From: Diplonema japonicum
Lineage: Eukaryota > Protista > Euglenozoa: Diplonemea
DNA: 64,000 nucleotides
Direction: 5' to 3'
NCBI GenBank assembly: GCA_964019335.1
Contig: OZ025710.1
Location: 440,299-504,298 of the forward strand
The notes under the pieces were generated by a model. It was given only the letters and a program-made list of their open reading frames with translations, did no database searches and was not told where the DNA came from. The position numbers and the translations under genes were made by a program. Below, in pieces: positions 2,513 through 33,751 of the stretch. Position 1 is the first letter of the stretch; each line of letters begins with the position of its first letter.

Positions 2513-4337
2513 GATTCGGTATCTTTCCATTTCTTTAAAAAAAAAAAAGCCCTTTTGTTTCTCGCCAGCCAACAAAAAAAAAAAAAAAAAAAAAAACCGT
2601 CAAGTTATTTTTCTTTTTGGGCAGCGGAAAAAGGTCCCCCCCTCCCTCCCCTAATTTCCAGGCTTATCTGTTACTTCTCCGGTTCAGTTGCGTTCGGCCC
2701 CCTCTGCCGCCACCTTGTTTTTACATTTTTTTTCTTTGATAGGCCGTTACCAGCACTCCCCCCCCCCCCCCCCCCTCATAGTGATTTTCTTCTTTAGAAG
2801 ATTATCGCACACAGAAGCAGCAAGCTCAAGTGATGTTTTTTTTTTTTTTTTTTTTAACCTTAAAATGCCTCTTTTCCTGACTTTTTTTACTACTTCTCTC
2901 GACATCTTCTTCGCCAAAGAACGGTTACACTACTGCAGGGGAGGGGGGGTATGTTGGCAAGGAAACGTGTTACCGTAGCTGGTTTCCTTATTATTCAGAA
3001 GAAATCGTGTTCCCTTCTTTAAGAAAAAGCCCCCAAAAATAAGGAAACGTGCTTCCATTCCGTATCTGTTTCTTTTTTTTTTTTTCAAAAAATACTTGGG
3101 AACACGTTCTTGCCAACATAGCTAGCCCTGGGGGGGGGGGGGGGTGTTAGAGAAAAAAATATGCACTCCCATCCCATTTCCTTGATCGTTATTCTTTTTT
3201 TTTTTCTCTTCTTTCAATGGGAAAAAAAAAAAAAAAAAAAAAACTCAAACAAAAAAAAGGGGAAAAAAAAATATCAGTAGTAAAGAAGAAGCATTGTTTT
3301 TAGTTTTTTTTTTTTTATAGAAATTAACTAAAAATAGTCTATCTTCTCGCACTGAGCAACCAAAAAAAAAATAATAATAATAATAATAATAATTCAAAAG
3401 TCACCCAACTAGGTGCGCAAACAAAAGAATTTTTTTTCTTTCCTTTTTTTCGTTTAATAAAAAGAAAAATGTAAGAGGTACAGCACGGCCACACGGTTCT
3501 TTATCAACAGCAACAAAACCAAATCTGTTGTTCTCTCTGGTGTTGTTTTATTTATCGGGGGGGGGGGGGGGGGGGTTGTTATTTGGTGGAGATCAGAAAC
3601 CCTCCCCTTCCCATTCTTTTTTTTGGGGGGATCTTTTTTACACAATTCTGCGCATAGTCAATTTCGATTTAAAAAAAAAAAAAGATATCTGTTTTTTTTT
3701 TGTTGAAAACTAATGCTTCACAACACCATTCCACACCACCACCAGTATCGGTCTTGGGTGCGATGAACGGCTTTGCATTCGTAAATGTAAAGAAAAAAAA
3801 AGGAAAAAAAAACTTTTTTTCGATACATGCACGCAGGAAGGTTTAGGACACCCCCTTTTTTTTCTACAACCAAACAAAAAATAATAACTTTTCTGATCAA
3901 TTTTCAAAAAAAAAATGAAGAAGGAAAAAAAAAAGGGGGGAAAAAAAAAGAAAAGGCTCACAGAAAGAAAAAAAAAAGAGAGAAAGAAAATAAAGAAGGG
4001 GTTGTGGAAAGAACAAAATATTTAGGCCCCCCCCCGCCGTACGTTGTTCCTGTTTAGCTGAAAGGGGGAGGGGGGGAAAAAAATGAAGGCCGGAAGAGGA
4101 TGGATCATGCATTACGTGAGGGGTGGTACAGAAAGAAATACAAGATTTTTTTTTCCCCTTCGAGGATGAACCCCAGAGGACGAACGAAAAAGAAGAAAAA
4201 AAAACCATCCAAAAACCTTGCCCATCCCCAGGTGCCTTTTTGCGATTCTAAATCCCCCTCCCTCTCCTTCTCTGATTCTAAATCCCGCCCCTCTCCAAGA
4301 GGCAAACTTTGAACTTTTCTTTTCCGTGTGTTGTTTT

Positions 4338-4378
<41 letters not shown>

Positions 4379-4405
4379 CTCCGCATACCTAAAAGAATAG
4401 TTTCT

Positions 4406-4452
<47 letters not shown>

Positions 4453-4634
4453 TCCAGAACAAAAAAAAAAACGGAGGAAGCGAGACCTCATCCTTCACCC
4501 CTCCCCCTTGTTAGCGGTGTTGCAGGTGGTTGCAAATCCTTCTGCCACACAGCACTCCAGTAAATGCTCTTTCTATCGAGAAAGAACCTTGTGGCGCGCT
4601 GTCAAGGAGAAAAAAAAAATAAATAAAAACCGAA

Positions 4635-28980: not shown

Positions 28981-29500
28981 GGTGCGTGAGAACCACCATT
29001 TCTATCTATCTCCTGTTGGCCCTACTGGCCCATCCCTCAACCTTTTCACACCTTCGGATGTGGATTTGGGATCAATGTTTGTGGACCCAGGCATTATCTT
29101 CACACCTCTCTTGCCTTACCTTGTACTCCTGTCCTTGGAAAAAAGTGGGAGTTGAAGAAATTACAGAAGAACGAAACAAAGAAGAAGAACCCCCCCCCCT
29201 CCGCCCAAAGACACACAACTAAGTACAGCACTAAATGGCGGCTGTATAAAACAACCCCCTACCTCTCGAGGGCGATAAGACCAGCTCGTCAACAGAGATA
29301 TTTCTTTTTCTTTTTTTTAAAATATTGTTTTCCCAGCAATACAGGGATCAACCACGCGTGGCTAGCTATTTGTGATTTGATTATTACCCCCCCTGTTTTT
29401 TTCTCTTTTCTTCATCAGGAATCTGTGGCTAAGGCAATCTGATGAAGTTTCGCCACGATAAGGGTAAGCTTAGTTTGCACACCCACCCATCCGCTAAAAA

Positions 29501-29657
29501 AAAAAAGAGTCGGCTGATTGTTTGTGCAAGCCGTTTTCACCTACAGTAGGGATAAACGGACAAGCTGCCTCTACTCTTTTTTGCAATAACAATTCTTTTC
29601 AAAAATTTGTTTACTTGTTCCAGCAAAAAAGAGTCGGCTGATTGTTTGTGCAAGCCG
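29501..29657 (-). repeat. 3' split direct repeat block B1-A2-B2
   Basis: AAAAAAGAGTCGGCTGATTGTTTGTGCAAGCCG occurs at 29501-29533 and 29625-29657. 29518-29630 is identical to 33405-33517. Confidence 0.92.
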
Positions 29658-29730
29658 GACCCCCCATATAGAGGAGGGTTAAGCGCCCAGGAATACCATG
29701 GGGCACCGGCCTCTACGTTTTCTTGGTGAA

Positions 29731-31287
29731 CTAGCTGTTCACCCACCTGCGCTGCCAAGCCAGCCTAGTGTAGGCGTCGGCGGGGTTGTCCTTCGATGGG
29801 ACGTATCTCAGCTGGAGAGTACAATCCCGTTCCTGCAGTACGGATTGCAACCTCGCGATCCAACCCATCGTCCCTTCGTCCAGCGCGTATCCCCTTGCCA
29901 CAGCCCCGATAACGGCCTTGTTGTCGCAGCCGCCCACAATGGCCAGACCGCCGCCTGCCCCCGACACGAGCTCCACGAGGCGTAACACCGCCACCAGCTC
30001 TTTCTCGAAGATCGGAATGTCCTTCCAATCCCGCGGAAACACGCCGCATGCGTAGCGGTCCTCGCCCACGGTGACACCCCATCCCAGCATGCTCGCGTCC
30101 GAGAAGGCCTCCACCGGCTGTCTCGAGCGACGGTCCCAGACACACCACAAATTTTGGGCCAACTGTTCCGTCTCACCAGCCAGGCAAGTCCGTGTGTCCT
30201 CGTCCAAGGTAACCTCCGTCTCCCAAAAACTCTTCCGGCGCATGCTCTGACCCCTTGAAGTGCGGGACATCCAGCGAAGAATCGGTACCACCCCCACGAA
30301 GGGCCTCAGCGTAGCATGCCGTCTCCAAAGCAGGACGCCGGCGAGCCTCCACCACAGTCTAACCGGTGCCTCCCGAGCGCGCAAGAGTGTAGAAGCGGGC
30401 CCGGCCACCTTCTGCACCCATCTTGTACTCATTCGCCATCGCTTCTCCCCGAGATCGATCTCCAAACCGAGCGTCTCCATCTTGGAGCACGGCTCCACCC
30501 GGTCGCCAATCACCACGCGAAACTCCGTGCACAGCGACTCGAATCTGGCACAGACCTGTTGCAGGGCGGCAAGCGTAGCAGCTCCAAACAAGTTGTTGTC
30601 TATCCATGCGTGATGACGAGCAGGAACGTCCTCCGTCGCTGCAGCACCCAAAGCTAAGCATACCCGTTGAGCACCCTGCGGAGCCGCCCGATACCCCATG
30701 GGTAGCCTCGTCAGCCTGAAGTAGGAAGGCATGTCGTCCCCCGCGCCTCGGATTCGGAAGGAAAAGAACGGCCTAACCGCCTCCGGTAAACCGAACTGGA
30801 AGAAAAAGGAGCGGAAATCGTACTCTGCGCAGTACTCGCAGCTCATTAGATCGGCGATGATGTCCCGGTATGCGGGCAGGTTGCAGCTGGGCAGAGGCAC
30901 GTCCAAAGTAGCGTTGTTGAAGTCCGTGCAGGCAAGGATAAAGCGCAGCCTCGAGGGATCCTTCTTCGGGACAGTGAACGCGGAGTGATACCACGGGGCG
31001 GAGGACCTCGTTGACGGCTCGGTCAAACCCATCATCCAGAGGGAACGTGCGTGGGGTCGTAGCTTTTCGTTAGGGGGACCCGGAGACTTCCTAAAGGACT
31101 GCTTCACCACGCTTCTAAGGAAATGGACGTCCGTCCACCATCGTAGAGAACCCTCCAGCCTAGGGAACCTGAGCAACAAGCCATCCGTGTCGATCGTGGA
31201 GGTGGGTATTCTGTCGACCTCACCGATGTACGCCGCCTTCGGCAGCCACACTCGAACCCAGCTCCAGCCACGACTCCACATAATCAT
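29731..31287 (-). CDS. Reverse transcriptase + RNase H of the YR retrotransposon
   Basis: RT: FTVPKKD..RLRFILAC, YDFRSFFFQF, RLPMGYRAAP, WIDN at the YxDD position. RNase H: FSDAS..GWG, IFEKELVAV, CDNKAV, YVPSKDNPADAYTR. Confidence 0.93.
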   Translation of the reverse strand: MIMWSRGWSWVRVWLPKAAYIGEVDRIPTSTIDTDGLLLRFPRLEGSLRWWTDVHFLRSVVKQSFRKSPGPPNEKLRPHARSLWMMGLTEPSTRSSAPWYHSAFTVPKKDPSRLRFILACTDFNNATLDVPLPSCNLPAYRDIIADLMSCEYCAEYDFRSFFFQFGLPEAVRPFFSFRIRGAGDDMPSYFRLTRLPMGYRAAPQGAQRVCLALGAAATEDVPARHHAWIDNNLFGAATLAALQQVCARFESLCTEFRVVIGDRVEPCSKMETLGLEIDLGEKRWRMSTRWVQKVAGPASTLLRAREAPVRLWWRLAGVLLWRRHATLRPFVGVVPILRWMSRTSRGQSMRRKSFWETEVTLDEDTRTCLAGETEQLAQNLWCVWDRRSRQPVEAFSDASMLGWGVTVGEDRYACGVFPRDWKDIPIFEKELVAVLRLVELVSGAGGGLAIVGGCDNKAVIGAVARGYALDEGTMGWIARLQSVLQERDCTLQLRYVPSKDNPADAYTRLAWQRRWVNS

Positions 31288-32374
31288 AGGTTCTGAACAC
31301 GTCCGTCAAACTGACCGGCCAACGCGGCACCGCCGGCTGAGACCTCACTGCAGGCTGGCGCCTCCCGCCCGTGTCTCCGCCGACGCCTGCCACGTCTCGG
31401 GAGGTATATATAACCTCGTTGTAGACGCCTCTGCGTGTCGAGCCATGCTCTGGGCCGTTCCTTCCCCCAGACGTCGCGCCACGTGAGTCAACGCCGCATG
31501 TCTTATGTCGTGAGCCGTGACGTTTAAGCTCTTCATCAGGAAACGGTTGTACGCTACGCGGGATATCGTTGGGAAGACCCTTCGGTCCGGTGTAGCCGAC
31601 CGCATCCTTCCTTCGATCCACCGCTTCGCAGACCCAAATAGGTTTCCGTCCGACGGGACCACGACCCCCTGACCCTTCCCTTGTCGGTCGGTCTTCCCGC
31701 CAACCAGCATGATCAAGGTCTCCCCGGGGCGGGGGAACACGTGCCCTATTAGAAGACGTTCTACGTCCACGAACCGACCGGCCGTGCTCCATTGCAAGGA
31801 CAGGGCAGCCGTCAACATGTCCTGCGGGGACGAGATCACACTGAGCACCTGCTCCCGTGACACCAGAATCCTCTGGCTTTCTAGGCGATGGTTGAAAACC
31901 TCCAGTCTCCCTTGGAGGGAACGACGATAGGCTGCCGTCGGGCCGACCTGACCCATCCGCCAGTAAGTCATGTACTGTAGTGCGGAGGAAGCGGAAATCT
32001 GCCCCGCACTGCGTTTCCTTTCTATCCATAGCAGGAAGGCCTCCTCCTCCGATATCGTCGGATGCCATCTGCGTACCTGCTCCGCGAATTGCCGACCCCT
32101 GCGAAGGACCGAGACCACCGAGTCTTGAGATTTGTAGCAAGTCCCCATGAACTCTTGCGTTTGCAGTAGTAGGGGTCCCACTTCCTCCTTCGCGATCGAA
32201 TAGTCGTTTAACCGCGGCCGACCCTTCGGAGTCGCAGAGGGAGTGAGAAACGTTTTTGATAAATGAAAAAGAGGAGCGAGCGGGGGGAGGGAACCGTTGA
32301 CGGGAGCTAGAGAAGTACTGTTCTGATTGGTACGAGTTAGGGATGGTGGATGAGTCAGCTGTCAATGCCTCGCC
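31220..32374 (-). CDS. Long overlapping ORF (>=381 codons) in the -1 frame relative to gag/YR; candidate N-terminal part of Pol
   Basis: Stop-free across the whole YR gene, entered by -1 slippage at A AAA AAG (32380-32374), and overlaps the RT ORF start. No recognisable motif. Confidence 0.4.
   Translation of the reverse strand, partial: GEALTADSSTIPNSYQSEQYFSSSRQRFPPPARSSFSFIKNVSHSLCDSEGSAAVKRLFDREGGSGTPTTANARVHGDLLQISRLGGLGPSQGSAIRGAGTQMASDDIGGGGLPAMDRKETQCGADFRFLRTTVHDLLADGSGRPDGSLSSFPPRETGGFQPSPRKPEDSGVTGAGAQCDLVPAGHVDGCPVLAMEHGRSVRGRRTSSNRARVPPPRGDLDHAGWREDRPTREGSGGRGPVGRKPIWVCEAVDRRKDAVGYTGPKGLPNDIPRSVQPFPDEELKRHGSRHKTCGVDSRGATSGGRNGPEHGSTRRGVYNEVIYTSRDVAGVGGDTGGRRQPAVRSQPAVPRWPVSLTDVFRTYDYVESWLELGSSVAAEGGVHR
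31345..32361 (-). CDS. Tyrosine recombinase of the retrotransposon
   Basis: Catalytic R-K-H-R-H-Y set: STAGRFVDV, GGKTD, TAHDIRH, MARHAEASTTRLY. The frame is open back to the gag TGA (32364-32362). First in-frame ATG is at 32148. Confidence 0.92.
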   Translation of the reverse strand, partial: QLTHPPSLTRTNQNSTSLAPVNGSLPPLAPLFHLSKTFLTPSATPKGRPRLNDYSIAKEEVGPLLLQTQEFMGTCYKSQDSVVSVLRRGRQFAEQVRRWHPTISEEEAFLLWIERKRSAGQISASSALQYMTYWRMGQVGPTAAYRRSLQGRLEVFNHRLESQRILVSREQVLSVISSPQDMLTAALSLQWSTAGRFVDVERLLIGHVFPRPGETLIMLVGGKTDRQGKGQGVVVPSDGNLFGSAKRWIEGRMRSATPDRRVFPTISRVAYNRFLMKSLNVTAHDIRHAALTHVARRLGEGTAQSMARHAEASTTRLYIPPETWQASAETRAGGASLQ

Positions 32375-33400
32375 TTTTTTGGACCCCCACCGTTGAAGTA
32401 ATTCGGTCTCTTTGAGGGTTCTGACCTAAGAGGTTCCGACTTTACCGCCGCCGCCAGCCGAGCCGCGGCGCTGATGACATTGCCATCAACCTTCGTCCAT
32501 TCCAATCCTTCCAGCCTTTCCTCGTACACCAAGGCCCTTTCCATGCCGGATTGGCGATCCGGAGCCTTGGCCCTGATACGGCAACACTCCAGCTGGACCA
32601 TGAGATCGTGCGCCAGCGGAAACAGGGCCTCCCCTACCGTAGAGCGGGAAGATATGCGTCAGGTACCGGAACAACCTACGAACATCGTGTTCGTGTCCAC
32701 GCGCAGTGTCCCGGGCGTCCTCCGGGATCGGTCCGTAGCGAGTCCGGATGTTTCCAAGGAGCTGACGTCTGAGATGGGCGTGCGTGACGTGTCCGACCCA
32801 GGACGTCACTCTTCTGGTGTCCACCGAATACGGAAGTTCGTCTGGCACCAGTCCTGCTTGGCCCCCTTCCAGGCCTGCGTGGCCTCCTCCTAGGCCTGCT
32901 TGGCCCCCTCCCAGGCCTGCGTGGCCTCCTCCCAGGCCTGCTTGGCCCCCTCCTAGACCTGCTTGGCCTTCTCCTCGACCTGCGGGGTCGGTGGATCCCT
33001 CCTGGTCTGCGAGGCCCAGACTCTTGAGCCCCCCCGGGCTGCTCAAGAATGCCCTGAAGGCGCCCATCAGCCCCTCCGTCAGGACGGGGGCCTGTTTCTC
33101 CTCCCTAGCGGGGGAGCCCAGCAGCACCAGAGGTTCGCCCTCCTTCTGGACCGCCCATAGACACCGGGGGCAGAGCCAACCCCTGGAGCCCAGGTCCTTT
33201 AGAAGGTGGGTTCCATCCCTTTTGTGGACCTGCCTGAGGCAGGCTTCGTTGCCCAGGCAACCACATCTGGGGCAATGGAACCCCGTTTTGTGCTCCCGGT
33301 CGCAGCCGGCAGCACAGTCCGGGTCCGCCGGCGCCGTGGGGGCCCCCTCCGGGTATAGCATAACCGACAACTCCGACGGGTCGATGTCTGCGCAAGCCAT
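32362..33400 (-). CDS. Gag-like ORF1 with N-terminal PHD-like finger; apparently split by a frameshift near 32640-32655
   Basis: ATG at 33400 (MACADID). Cys pattern C-x3-C-x9-C-x2-C-x4-N-x2-C...W-x-C-x2-C, then GLGGGQA repeats. A protein-like continuation STVGEALFPLAHDLMVQLECC...KKARH* lies in the next frame. Confidence 0.7.
32849..32975 (-). repeat. 21-bp coding minisatellite (GLGGG[Q/H]A) x about 6 in ORF1
   Basis: Repeated CCTGC(T/G)TGGCC(C/T)CCTCC(C/T)AGG units on the + strand. Confidence 0.85.
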
Positions 33401-33404
33401 ATTT

Positions 33405-33517
33405 TTGTTTGTGCAAGCCGTTTTCACCTACAGTAGGGATAAACGGACAAGCTGCCTCTACTCTTTTTTGCAATAACAATTCTTTTCAAAAATTTGTTTA
33501 CTTGTTCCAGCAAAAAA
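33405..33517 (-). repeat. 5' repeat A1 of the retrotransposon (113 bp)
   Basis: Identical to 29518-29630, offset 3887 bp. Confidence 0.92.
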
Positions 33518-33751
33518 AATAAGTTTCTTGTCAGAAACAATGCCTCCGGAAACAAAACGGTAGTAAGCATTGGACGACCATTTTATGCTGCTAGTTTTTT
33601 TTGGGCGAAAACAACTTTTTTTTCCCCAAGAGACTGGATATGAAGATTTTCAGAAATCCCTGCGACAATTAGCGAATAGTTGACCGCATCCAAAAGAAAG
33701 AAAGAAAAAAAAAAAAAAAAAAAAATACAAAGGTCCACACTATCATAATAA

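Follow-up and report, generated by a model that had tools for sequence, protein, structure and literature searches.

The window, a 64,000-nucleotide stretch of Diplonema japonicum DNA, carries a YR retrotransposon with the following features:

29496–33522, minus strand: whole element, ~4027 bp (4.0 kb), taken as the span of matches to other genomic copies
33405–33517, minus strand: 5′ split direct repeat A1, 113 bp, 100% identical to A2 (repeat search)
32489–33427, minus strand: N-terminal 313 codons of the gag-like ORF, whose frame is lost at a 5-nt deletion of the window copy near 32641
32365–32658, minus strand: C-terminal 98 codons of gag in the gag frame of the family, translated end ...GGGPKKARH
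32365–32425, minus strand: gag/pol overlap in the ORF map, 21 codons long up to the gag stop, with the −1 (pol) frame open from 32425
32374–32380, minus strand: A AAA AAG heptamer in X XXY YYZ phase with gag, candidate −1 slippage site, invariant in seven copies
32362–32364, minus strand: gag stop TGA followed by C (32361), the sole stop that separates gag from YR within their common frame
32230–32355, minus strand: unstructured C/U-rich linker, 40% C and 28% U, open in the YR and pol frames
32149–32223, minus strand: YR-frame codons 47–71, upstream of the first ATG, under protein-level selection (families A and B compared)
31345–32148, minus strand: YR from the conserved Met72 (ATG 32148–32146) to its TGA stop (31347–31345), with HDIRH and TTRLY motifs
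31223–32425, minus strand: pol-frame (−1) 'spacer', 401 codons, stop-free, not conserved as protein
31246–31248, minus strand: 2-nt deletion private to the window copy, splitting the spacer from RT (other copies and contigs compared)
29731–31305, minus strand: RT and putative RNase H part of pol, open over 524 codons up to the TAG stop (29733–29731)
29501–29657, minus strand: 3′ repeat block B1-A2-B2, with A2 at 29518–29630 and 33-nt B repeats at 29625–29657 and 29501–29533 (repeat search)

The genes follow one another in the order gag-like, YR, RT/RH, no methyltransferase domain was detected with Pfam, and the split direct repeats A1 ... B1-A2-B2 are 100% identical for both A and B. The insertion site is oligo-A, with A-rich loose ends on both flanks in the reads. 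From its sequence, we assign the element to a young family of VIPER-like YR retrotransposons, of the order DIRS, in a diplonemid. The RT matches Pfam RVT_1 (E 3.9e-7) and is 40% identical to Pol of D. papillatum; RNase H has no Pfam match in the element, and the TDAS...DN...ADxYTR motifs were recognized by eye in relatives only. YR matches Pfam Phage_integrase with E 1.6e-3, below the gathering score, with the HxxR and RLY motifs present, and has homologues in D. papillatum at 41–44% identity. Relatives of the gag-like ORF, which contains a variable 21-nt repeat (GQAGLGG, 32848–32983), occur in D. papillatum and other diplonemids. Since the D. japonicum transcriptome contains a YR ORF that is 98% identical, the family is transcribed.

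The window copy is defective: the 5-nt deletion breaks gag and the 2-nt deletion parts the −1 frame from RT, and both are absent from other copies and from short-read contigs. At ~32641, the 5 nt missing here are present in six other copies and in Logan contigs of three runs; at ~31247, the copies L009, L010 and L011 and the contigs of all four runs have the missing 2 nt and keep the −1 frame continuous into RT. These deletions bear on a sequence-only reading of the locus, which had gag end in the frame of CAT TGA and had let the −1 frame reach the RT ORF. In the window copy only the last 98 codons of gag (32658–32365) are in the first of these frames, the main 313-codon gag ORF (33427–32489) lying in another; the second statement holds for the family, but in the window copy the −1 frame overlaps the RT ORF (31305–29734) out of frame. 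L011 is a natural copy that displays the ground plan of the family, with an unbroken gag of 347 aa from its ATG and the same C-terminal end, and with a pol-frame ORF that runs from the overlap into RT.

The family gag terminus reads CCA AAA AAG GCG AGG CAT TGA, with the heptamer 9 nt before the TGA, and its frame closes at 32364–32362. As that reading had noticed, A AAA AAG at 32380–32374 is in X XXY YYZ phase with this frame; no other A AAA AAG in gag is in phase, and this one lies inside the 21-codon overlap. The −1 frame, described there as open for more than 381 codons, extends over 401 (32425–31223), or 381 aa if counted from TTG 32365. It was likewise correct that the YR frame is the gag frame behind a single TGA-C with no ATG for 71 codons: after the gag TGA this frame is open for 338 codons (32361–31348), and its first ATG is codon 72. 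An assembly artefact can be discounted for the A6 run: seven copies agree on it, and short-read contigs contain no indel there. Rare codons make up the site, CCA encoding 7 of 74 Pro and AAA 9 of 36 Lys. Heptamer and TGA are kept in all seven copies of this family (family A), and the pol frame of L011 is open, as the sequence-only reading would have it; copies within a family are 92–99% identical, so that conservation among them carries little weight.

Family C of the same genome, ~35% identical, has an in-phase CCA AAA AAG, again of rare codons, directly before TGA in a 9-codon gag/pol overlap, with heptamer and TGA kept in all seven of its copies. Given the peptide P-K-K, the probability of the heptamer is ~0.024 in A and ~0.038 in C (~1e-3 jointly), and alignment of the gag tails places the two heptamers at apparently non-homologous positions. 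In both families gag, TGA and YR lie in one frame. Family B has no heptamer; its pol is in frame behind the gag TGA and its YR is +1 to gag, and three copies with 98–100% identity are collinear at the gag/pol junction, with no net indel. In this comparison of only three families, all from one genome, presence of the heptamer goes with the layouts that require a shift: A and C have it, whereas B, with pol in frame, does not.

Openness of the pol frame was evaluated by synonymous-codon shuffles of YR, with stops counted in the pol frame. In four diverged families of this genome the pol frame is stop-free across YR, where the shuffles predict 8–12 stops, a result with P of ~1e-4 to 1e-6 in each. 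For family A, ~10 stops were expected and 0 seen (0 of 20,000 shuffles gave 0; naive P 2e-5); for family B, ~12 were expected and 0 seen (P ~1e-6); P was 2.5e-4 and 0.025 for the two halves of family C, and 5e-5 for family D. The +1 frame over YR carries 11–19 stops, matching expectation, and in family A the openness extends to the 98 codons that precede any ATG of the pol frame (P 0.005). In the overlap, the pol-frame peptide retains 34% identity, with gaps, compared with 60% for YR on the same DNA; as this peptide is not conserved, selection acts on passage rather than on sequence. Conserved pol sequence (PRWPVSLTDVFRTYDYVESWLELGS) begins at ~31330, directly after the YR stop. The pol frame has no conserved ATG: the first is codon 119 in A and codon 44 in C, and in family B none occurs for 348 and 340 codons past the gag stop. 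By these comparisons, selection maintains a −1 frame that is open all the way from its overlap with gag, across YR and into RT.

From the frames, the selected openness, the recurring heptamer and the coding signature ahead of Met72 (below), we infer a scheme of translation and the proportions within it. Most ribosomes would end at UGA and produce Gag. A minority would slip back one base on A_AAA_AAG into the pol frame and traverse the YR region as non-conserved spacer, giving a Gag-spacer-RT/RH fusion. YR would probably be made by translation that continues from gag via UGA readthrough, since its conserved N-terminal part already begins before the first AUG. To this account as a whole, a family with a −1 slip for Gag-Pol and probable readthrough for YR, we assign a probability of roughly 0.6. 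Dual recoding had been the proposal of the sequence-only reading. Its slip to Gag-Pol is well supported by the family comparison and seems likely to us, whereas readthrough to Gag-YR is plausible but weaker, and we advance it tentatively.

Several observations run against this account. In family B, YR is +1 to gag, so that readthrough of the simple kind cannot serve all families as the means to express YR. In the animal and yeast systems examined to date, A_AAA_AAG promotes only weak −1 shifting. YR elements moreover lack a protease, so that the fusions would remain unprocessed. The downstream stimulatory RNA structure contemplated in the sequence-only reading did not materialize: downstream of the heptamer, neither A nor C has a predicted stem-loop, and MFE folding, a method that does not cover pseudoknots, was no better than for shuffles (z +0.2 to +1.2). 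Nor was a known readthrough motif (CARYYA, CUAG) or structure found 3′ of the TGA in A or C, where CAG CUG (5/6 positions of CARYYA) and GCC GCG follow, respectively. Conservation in relatives, another expectation of that reading, is divided: the open pol frame recurs in four families and the heptamer in A and C, but the base after the gag TGA differs among families (C, G, A). The C/U-rich linker might act as a splice-acceptor tract, stimulate recoding by binding a protein or, once translated, form a Pro/Ser-rich linker in the protein.

YR might instead have its own start, Met72 or an upstream near-cognate codon used through leaky scanning or internal entry, so that the gag-YR TGA would be a coincidence of frame and only Gag-Pol would be recoded. 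Met72 is invariant in families A, B and C and in D. papillatum, which suits such a start, as do the position of YR outside the gag frame in family B, the lack of conservation in the post-TGA context and a chance of ~0.23–0.29 per family that the YR frame between TGA and the conserved block is open. Comparison of A with B nevertheless indicates that YR coding begins before its first ATG. Over the 26 codons ending at M72, 16 of 26 residues are identical, 10 of these through different, synonymous codons, at 60% nucleotide identity, whereas the other two frames over the same stretch retain 6/27 and 9/27 residues. In families A and C the interval from the gag TGA to Met72 lacks an ATG, as do the 109 codons of open YR frame that lead up to the Met of family B. 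Moreover, families A, B and C share no conserved near-cognate start, and a ribosome that scans from the 5′ end must traverse all of gag. With this strong coding signature before Met72, we consider a separate YR start somewhat unlikely.

At least 26 codons of YR coding upstream of Met72, with no ATG, also weigh against separate mRNAs, a model in which full-length RNA would yield Gag only and YR and/or Pol would be translated from subgenomic RNAs, cis-spliced or SL trans-spliced at an AG past the C/U tract, with heptamer and TGA incidental. Diplonemids do trans-splice their mRNAs, and in A, B and C a strongly pyrimidine-rich stretch of 100–130 nt follows the gag stop, with AG dinucleotides beyond it, as in UUUUCUAUUCAG of family B. 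Splicing would tolerate the difference in YR-versus-gag frame between B and A/C, and the invariant Met72 would also fit. However, in family B the pol frame is kept open right from the gag stop, its first 348 codons contain no ATG, and a spliced leader would have to supply the start; the rare-codon heptamer is found in A and C and is missing only where pol is in frame; and, as weak evidence, no retro-copy or transcriptome ORF starts at such an acceptor. Separate mRNAs are thus, in our judgement, unlikely.

A single-frame Gag-Pol would also arise if RNA polymerase added one A to the A6 run, so that a minority of A7 transcripts encoded the fusion. One additional A would, by reasoning, shift gag into the pol frame, folding predicts no structure that would stimulate ribosomes, and slippage at A runs is known in other systems (PMC5009743). 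In family C, however, the stop follows the heptamer immediately, as is typical of P-site slippage by ribosomes, and no A7 variant is present in the contigs, which represent DNA and drop rare variants. A6 is moreover short for efficient slippage by cellular polymerases, and we regard this origin of Gag-Pol as quite improbable. That heptamer, TGA context and open frame reflect mere chance in a decaying GC-rich repeat is very improbable, for although the window copy is defective and the window has other long spurious ORFs, the shuffle tests in four families, the recurrence of the rare-codon heptamer and the complementary layout of family B all argue otherwise.

A broader proposition, which we offer as speculative, is that diplonemid VIPER-like elements possess a compact, structure-independent dual-recoding module at the gag end, yielding three proteins from one RNA, with assignments permuted in evolution. 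Families A and C would use A_AAA_AAG for Gag-Pol and the adjacent UGA for Gag-YR; family B would use UGA readthrough for Gag-Pol and reach YR via a +1 shift; and the entire YR gene would be read in two frames by different ribosomes. Seven codons ahead of the stop, family B has a candidate +1 site, UUC_UUU_CGC, similar to the influenza PA-X site UCC_UUU_CGU (PMC3498833). For YR retrotransposons, we found no description in the literature of a −1 slip combined with readthrough at the gag end.

Among known elements, kinetoplastid VIPER and TATE, with the short derivative SIRE, have the same order of gag-like, YR and RT/RH genes (PMC6681497). VIPER further shares a size of ~4–4.5 kb, split direct repeats A1...B1-A2-B2, the lack of a methyltransferase, a long RT/RH ORF, a euglenozoan host and abundant short derivatives built from the two ends. 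In T. cruzi VIPER, gag has 492 aa, YR 338 aa and RT/RH 948 aa (PMC6681497); by our arithmetic these cannot fit ~4.5 kb, and the ORFs must overlap. Published accounts of VIPER/TATE give ORF phases and overlaps, and we found no frameshift or readthrough signal proposed in them. Unlike VIPER, the present element resides in a diplonemid and its closest proteins are from Diplonema (40% identity); its likeness to VIPER is one of layout and domains. DIRS-1 of Dictyostelium and DIRS1-like elements likewise combine extensive YR-pol ORF overlap with the lack of a protease or DDE integrase (PMC3266345), but have inverted terminal repeats, an internal complementary region and a methyltransferase, in place of the split direct repeats and undetectable methyltransferase seen here.

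The heptamer itself is identical to bacterial A_AAA_AAG sites (E. coli dnaX, IS elements), and family C shares with them the stop directly 3′ (PMC5009743). Bacterial efficiency depends on a single tRNA-Lys (PMC5009743); the host here is a eukaryote. Retroviral and LTR −1 sites (HIV U_UUU_UUA, HTLV/MMTV A_AAA_AAC) also set a shift heptamer in a short gag/pol overlap, and retroviral Gag-Pol fusions made by a −1 shift or by a leaky stop (murine leukaemia virus) parallel families A/C and family B, respectively. Unlike retroviral cassettes, the heptamer here ends in G with no 3′ stem-loop predicted by MFE folding, a non-conserved spacer of ~340 codons that overlaps another gene comes before RT, and past the same stop the zero frame encodes a second enzyme, YR. 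In arterivirus nsp2, −2/−1 frameshifting is stimulated by a protein-bound C-rich motif. The resemblance, and it is only that, lies in one site with several products, no RNA structure and a C-rich tract 11–19 nt downstream, which in families A and C reads CUCAYYC.

The features that the sequence-only reading had placed at the gag end of this VIPER-like element, namely the heptamer A AAA AAG, a TGA-C context, an open -1 frame and a tyrosine recombinase (YR) frame, are all present on the minus strand.

33522-29496, minus strand: whole element, ~4.0 kb
32425-31223, minus strand: -1 frame, 401 open codons
32380-32374, minus strand: heptamer
32364-32362, minus strand: gag stop TGA, where gag ends ...GGT CCA AAA AAG GCG AGG CAT TGA C
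31305-29734, minus strand: reverse transcriptase (RT), Pfam RVT_1

The frame past the gag TGA remains open for 338 codons, has its first ATG at codon 72 (Met72) and encodes the tyrosine recombinase. TGA as a sense codon was rejected, with no in-frame TGA in the gag, YR or pol ORFs of a second copy (L011) or in those frames that are open in the window copy; all Trp residues in these frames are encoded by TGG, and TGA also terminates YR and some pol ORFs.

The repeats of the element follow the order A1...B1-A2-B2, with A repeats of 113 bp and B repeats of 33 nt, each set being identical. The 62.5 Mb genome holds ~7 long copies with 92-98% identity (family A) and dozens of short derivatives built from the element's two ends. 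SIRE-like derivatives (many loci, for example L017-L034) consist of 200-340 bp from the start of the element fused to 38-135 bp from its end, corresponding to window 33200-33522 and 29496-29630; read depth of the termini is ~100x that of the interior. In the alignment of copies, the losses of 5 nt at ~32641 and 2 nt at ~31247 and the gain of 12 nt at ~29741 are private to the window copy. Short-read contigs from 4 runs in 2 studies, with depth ratios that look DNA-like, carry the majority indel states and an A6 run without indel. Restoring the 5 nt extends the 313-codon gag ORF into the frame ending CAT TGA, and restoring the 2 nt makes the -1 frame continuous with RT. L011 naturally has both: its gag, counted from the ATG, is 347 aa long with the C-terminus ...GGGPKKARH, and its pol-frame ORF leads out of the overlap and reaches the RT motifs. 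Because the deletions of the window copy are absent elsewhere and L011 shows gag and pol intact, the window copy is, on this alignment, broken, and the plan of the family is gag, a single TGA and YR in the gag frame, with pol (spacer plus RT region) in the -1 frame, starting 21 codons ahead of the gag stop and spanning the entire YR. Every translation was made from a natural copy, without building a consensus or repairing a sequence.

A 21-nt tandem repeat in gag (GQAGLGG units, window 32848-32983) is variable in copy number, with 21-nt and 42-nt indels among copies. Two family A copies on contig C83, L014 (~427.7-429.3 kb) and L010 (429.2-432.6 kb), are arranged in tandem and have one 113-bp repeat in common. 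Compared with L011, C>T or G>A changes at CpG make up 74/82 differences in L014, the first tandem copy (~1/3 of CpG positions hit), and 21/31 in L010, the second; dispersed family A copies carry 0-3 CpG transitions. This looks like CpG hypermutation of the tandem pair, by 5mC deamination or a RIP-like process on the duplicate, in a diplonemid. On contig C115, one family A copy ends at window-equivalent 30730; on C49, another starts at 30729 (L011, L015). The L011 translation (~4300-4500) enters a masked (X) stretch and then a short tandem repeat, perhaps the mark of an interrupted or rearranged copy.

A six-frame search of the genome with RT recovered three sister families beyond A, which served as independent comparisons.

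Family B: ~60% amino-acid identity; L042, L043 and a third copy on contig C93
Family C: ~35% identity; seven copies
Family D: ~27% identity

The third family B copy (G000:C93:141838-142612) has a 2-nt deletion within YR, and a relative on C95 (G000:C95:96639-96848) shares 74-75% identity with the gag end of family B. The split YR of family C was discarded as a signal, since it comes down to a single nucleotide in the length of a G run within the YR motif VGGKTD. This run is G5 in L045, L046 and L051 (~1030-1040) and G6 in L047 (~985); the G5 state breaks YR and pol into two frames and reflects either a lesion that these copies have in common or a homopolymer error of the assembly.

Synonymous codons were shuffled within YR, preserving its protein and codon usage, and the stops that arose in the overlapping pol frame were compared with those present.

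Stops in the pol frame over YR
Family A: expected ~10, seen 0, P ~2e-5
Family B: expected ~12, seen 0, P ~1e-6
Family C, two halves: expected ~6.7 and 2.7, seen 0 and 0, P 2.5e-4 and 0.025
Family D: expected ~8.3, seen 0, P 5e-5

The remaining frame over YR contains 11-19 stops, matching expectation, and not one of the YR codons beginning AA, AG or GA (60-72 each in family A, B or D) follows a T-ending codon. Judged by this test, the open pol frame across YR is maintained by selection. Between A and B, the same DNA encodes pol-frame peptides with 34% identity, with gaps, and YR with 60%; conserved pol sequence starts immediately past the YR stop. Because the pol frame is kept open while its peptide over YR is not conserved, these comparisons indicate that ribosomes must traverse the YR region in the pol frame and that the product there is a spacer. 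One DNA stretch would be read in two frames, with the pol frame kept for passage alone and not for the peptide sequence it encodes. In Flectonema, a 958-aa pol ORF likewise has ~440 non-conserved codons ahead of the conserved pol region. The family B pol frame runs for 348 and 340 codons past the gag stop without ATG. The first pol-frame ATG is codon 119 in A and codon 44 in C, positions that are not conserved, and the 98 codons ahead of it in A are also open (P 0.005). Taken together, the missing ATG in B, the unconserved ATGs in A and C and the open codons before them therefore argue that pol translation is continuous with gag.

In family C, gag ends TCG ACT CCA AAA AAG TGA G, with the heptamer in phase and directly 5' of the stop; the -1 frame opens just 9 codons upstream of the stop and, as in A, YR is in frame past the TGA. 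The family B gag ends ACG AAG CGT TGA A, without the heptamer, and pol continues in the gag frame past TGA for 709 codons; in the third B copy, this gag-TGA-pol stretch is free of net indels. Conservation of the heptamer and the TGA is complete, at 7/7 copies in family A and 7/7 in family C. Across the relatives, the heptamer recurs in A and C and the pol frame is open in A-D; the TGA-C context is not conserved, the next base being C, G or A by family. By this distribution, presence of the heptamer follows the need for a frame shift, A and C having it and B doing without. Its codons are rare in family A (CCA for 7/74 Pro, AAA for 9/36 Lys) and are used for 5/42 Pro and 16/50 Lys in C; with P-K-K taken as given, both families would have a shifty heptamer by chance with a probability of ~1e-3. 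In the gag-tail alignment, PKK of A faces TPKR of C (CCT AAG AGG), and therefore the two heptamers are possibly not positionally homologous.

From this comparative pattern, we assign a probability of about 0.65 to Gag-Pol being made by -1 slippage at A_AAA_AAG. The figure includes transcriptional slippage, which is itself an improbable substitute for ribosomal slippage at this site. Minimum-free-energy folding of the RNA downstream of the heptamer (A, C) or the TGA (B) gave nothing beyond shuffled controls. The stretch downstream of the gag stop is C/U-rich and could act as a linker in the protein, as a splice-acceptor tract or as a stimulator bound by protein.

Met72 is invariant in families A, B and C and in Diplonema papillatum. 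Over the 26 YR-frame codons that end at Met72, A and B are identical at 16/26 residues, 10/16 of them by different codons, at a nucleotide identity of only 60%; the two other frames give 6/27 and 9/27. This signature points to protein-level evolution of the 26 codons in the YR frame, and family C has part of the pre-Met72 motif. No ATG lies between the gag TGA and Met72 in A or C, none of the 109 open YR-frame codons ahead of the Met in B is ATG, and a comparison of A, B and C revealed no conserved near-cognate start upstream of Met72. Because a coding signature precedes Met72 without ATG or conserved near-cognate codon, YR translation seems to originate upstream of it. In A and C, YR would be reached via readthrough of the gag UGA; a YR frame open from the stop to the conserved block is expected by chance in ~1/4 of cases per family. 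In family B, YR is +1 relative to gag, and a different route is therefore needed there. A speculative candidate for a +1 shift is UUC_UUU_CGC, seven codons ahead of the stop, which resembles the influenza PA-X +1 site (PMC3498833). Production of Gag-YR via UGA readthrough is a tentative proposal, less likely than not, and the complete double switch of the sequence-only reading, with slippage yielding Gag-Pol and readthrough yielding Gag-YR, is somewhat less likely still. Between two sister families, the roles of frameshift and readthrough in reaching the shared pair of downstream genes appear to have been swapped.

The best RT matches are D. papillatum proteins (40% identity), and gag has relatives in D. 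papillatum, D. ambulator, Lacrimia and marine metagenomes. The Diplonema japonicum transcriptome (EukProt) contains a YR ORF that is 98% identical; this makes the species very probably the host and shows that family A is transcribed; a frame switch in the transcriptome ORF P0007 was put down to indels of its source copy. P0013, a gag from another species, ends ...VAKK, which at the protein level is uninformative on the heptamer. A metagenome scan with YR gave no match, and one with RT gave two 2.4-kb contigs (29-32% identity) without detectable YR or heptamer, which are likewise uninformative. In the D. papillatum protein P0001 ('Pol polyprotein, partial'), ~150 aa of the YR N-terminus are fused straight to the conserved pol region; this gene model is a chimaera of two overlapping frames. 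Its sister models are labelled 'Aspartic protease' and contain no detectable protease domain. In diplonemid genomes, gene callers at present split or wrongly fuse overlapping YR/pol ORFs, as in P0001.

Papers on VIPER/TATE, DIRS1-like and fungal DIRS/Ngaro elements report overlapping or 'frameshifted' ORFs and propose no recoding signal (PMC6681497, PMC3266345, PMC3783388), and YR elements are absent from a large recoding review (PMC5009743). No link between YR retrotransposons and programmed frameshifting or readthrough was found in openly readable full texts; for DIRS, Ngaro and VIPER, the literature searched gives the overlaps and phases of the ORFs and no explanation of their expression. 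Recoding at gag-pol junctions is classic. Recoding in YR retroelements, A_AAA_AAG in a eukaryote without visible stimulator and a second enzyme gene, read in two frames, beyond the gag stop all appear to be undescribed. [quoted passage not shown] Families A and C on the one hand and B on the other would then show the same pattern as retroviruses, in which some lineages rely on a shift and others on a leaky stop.
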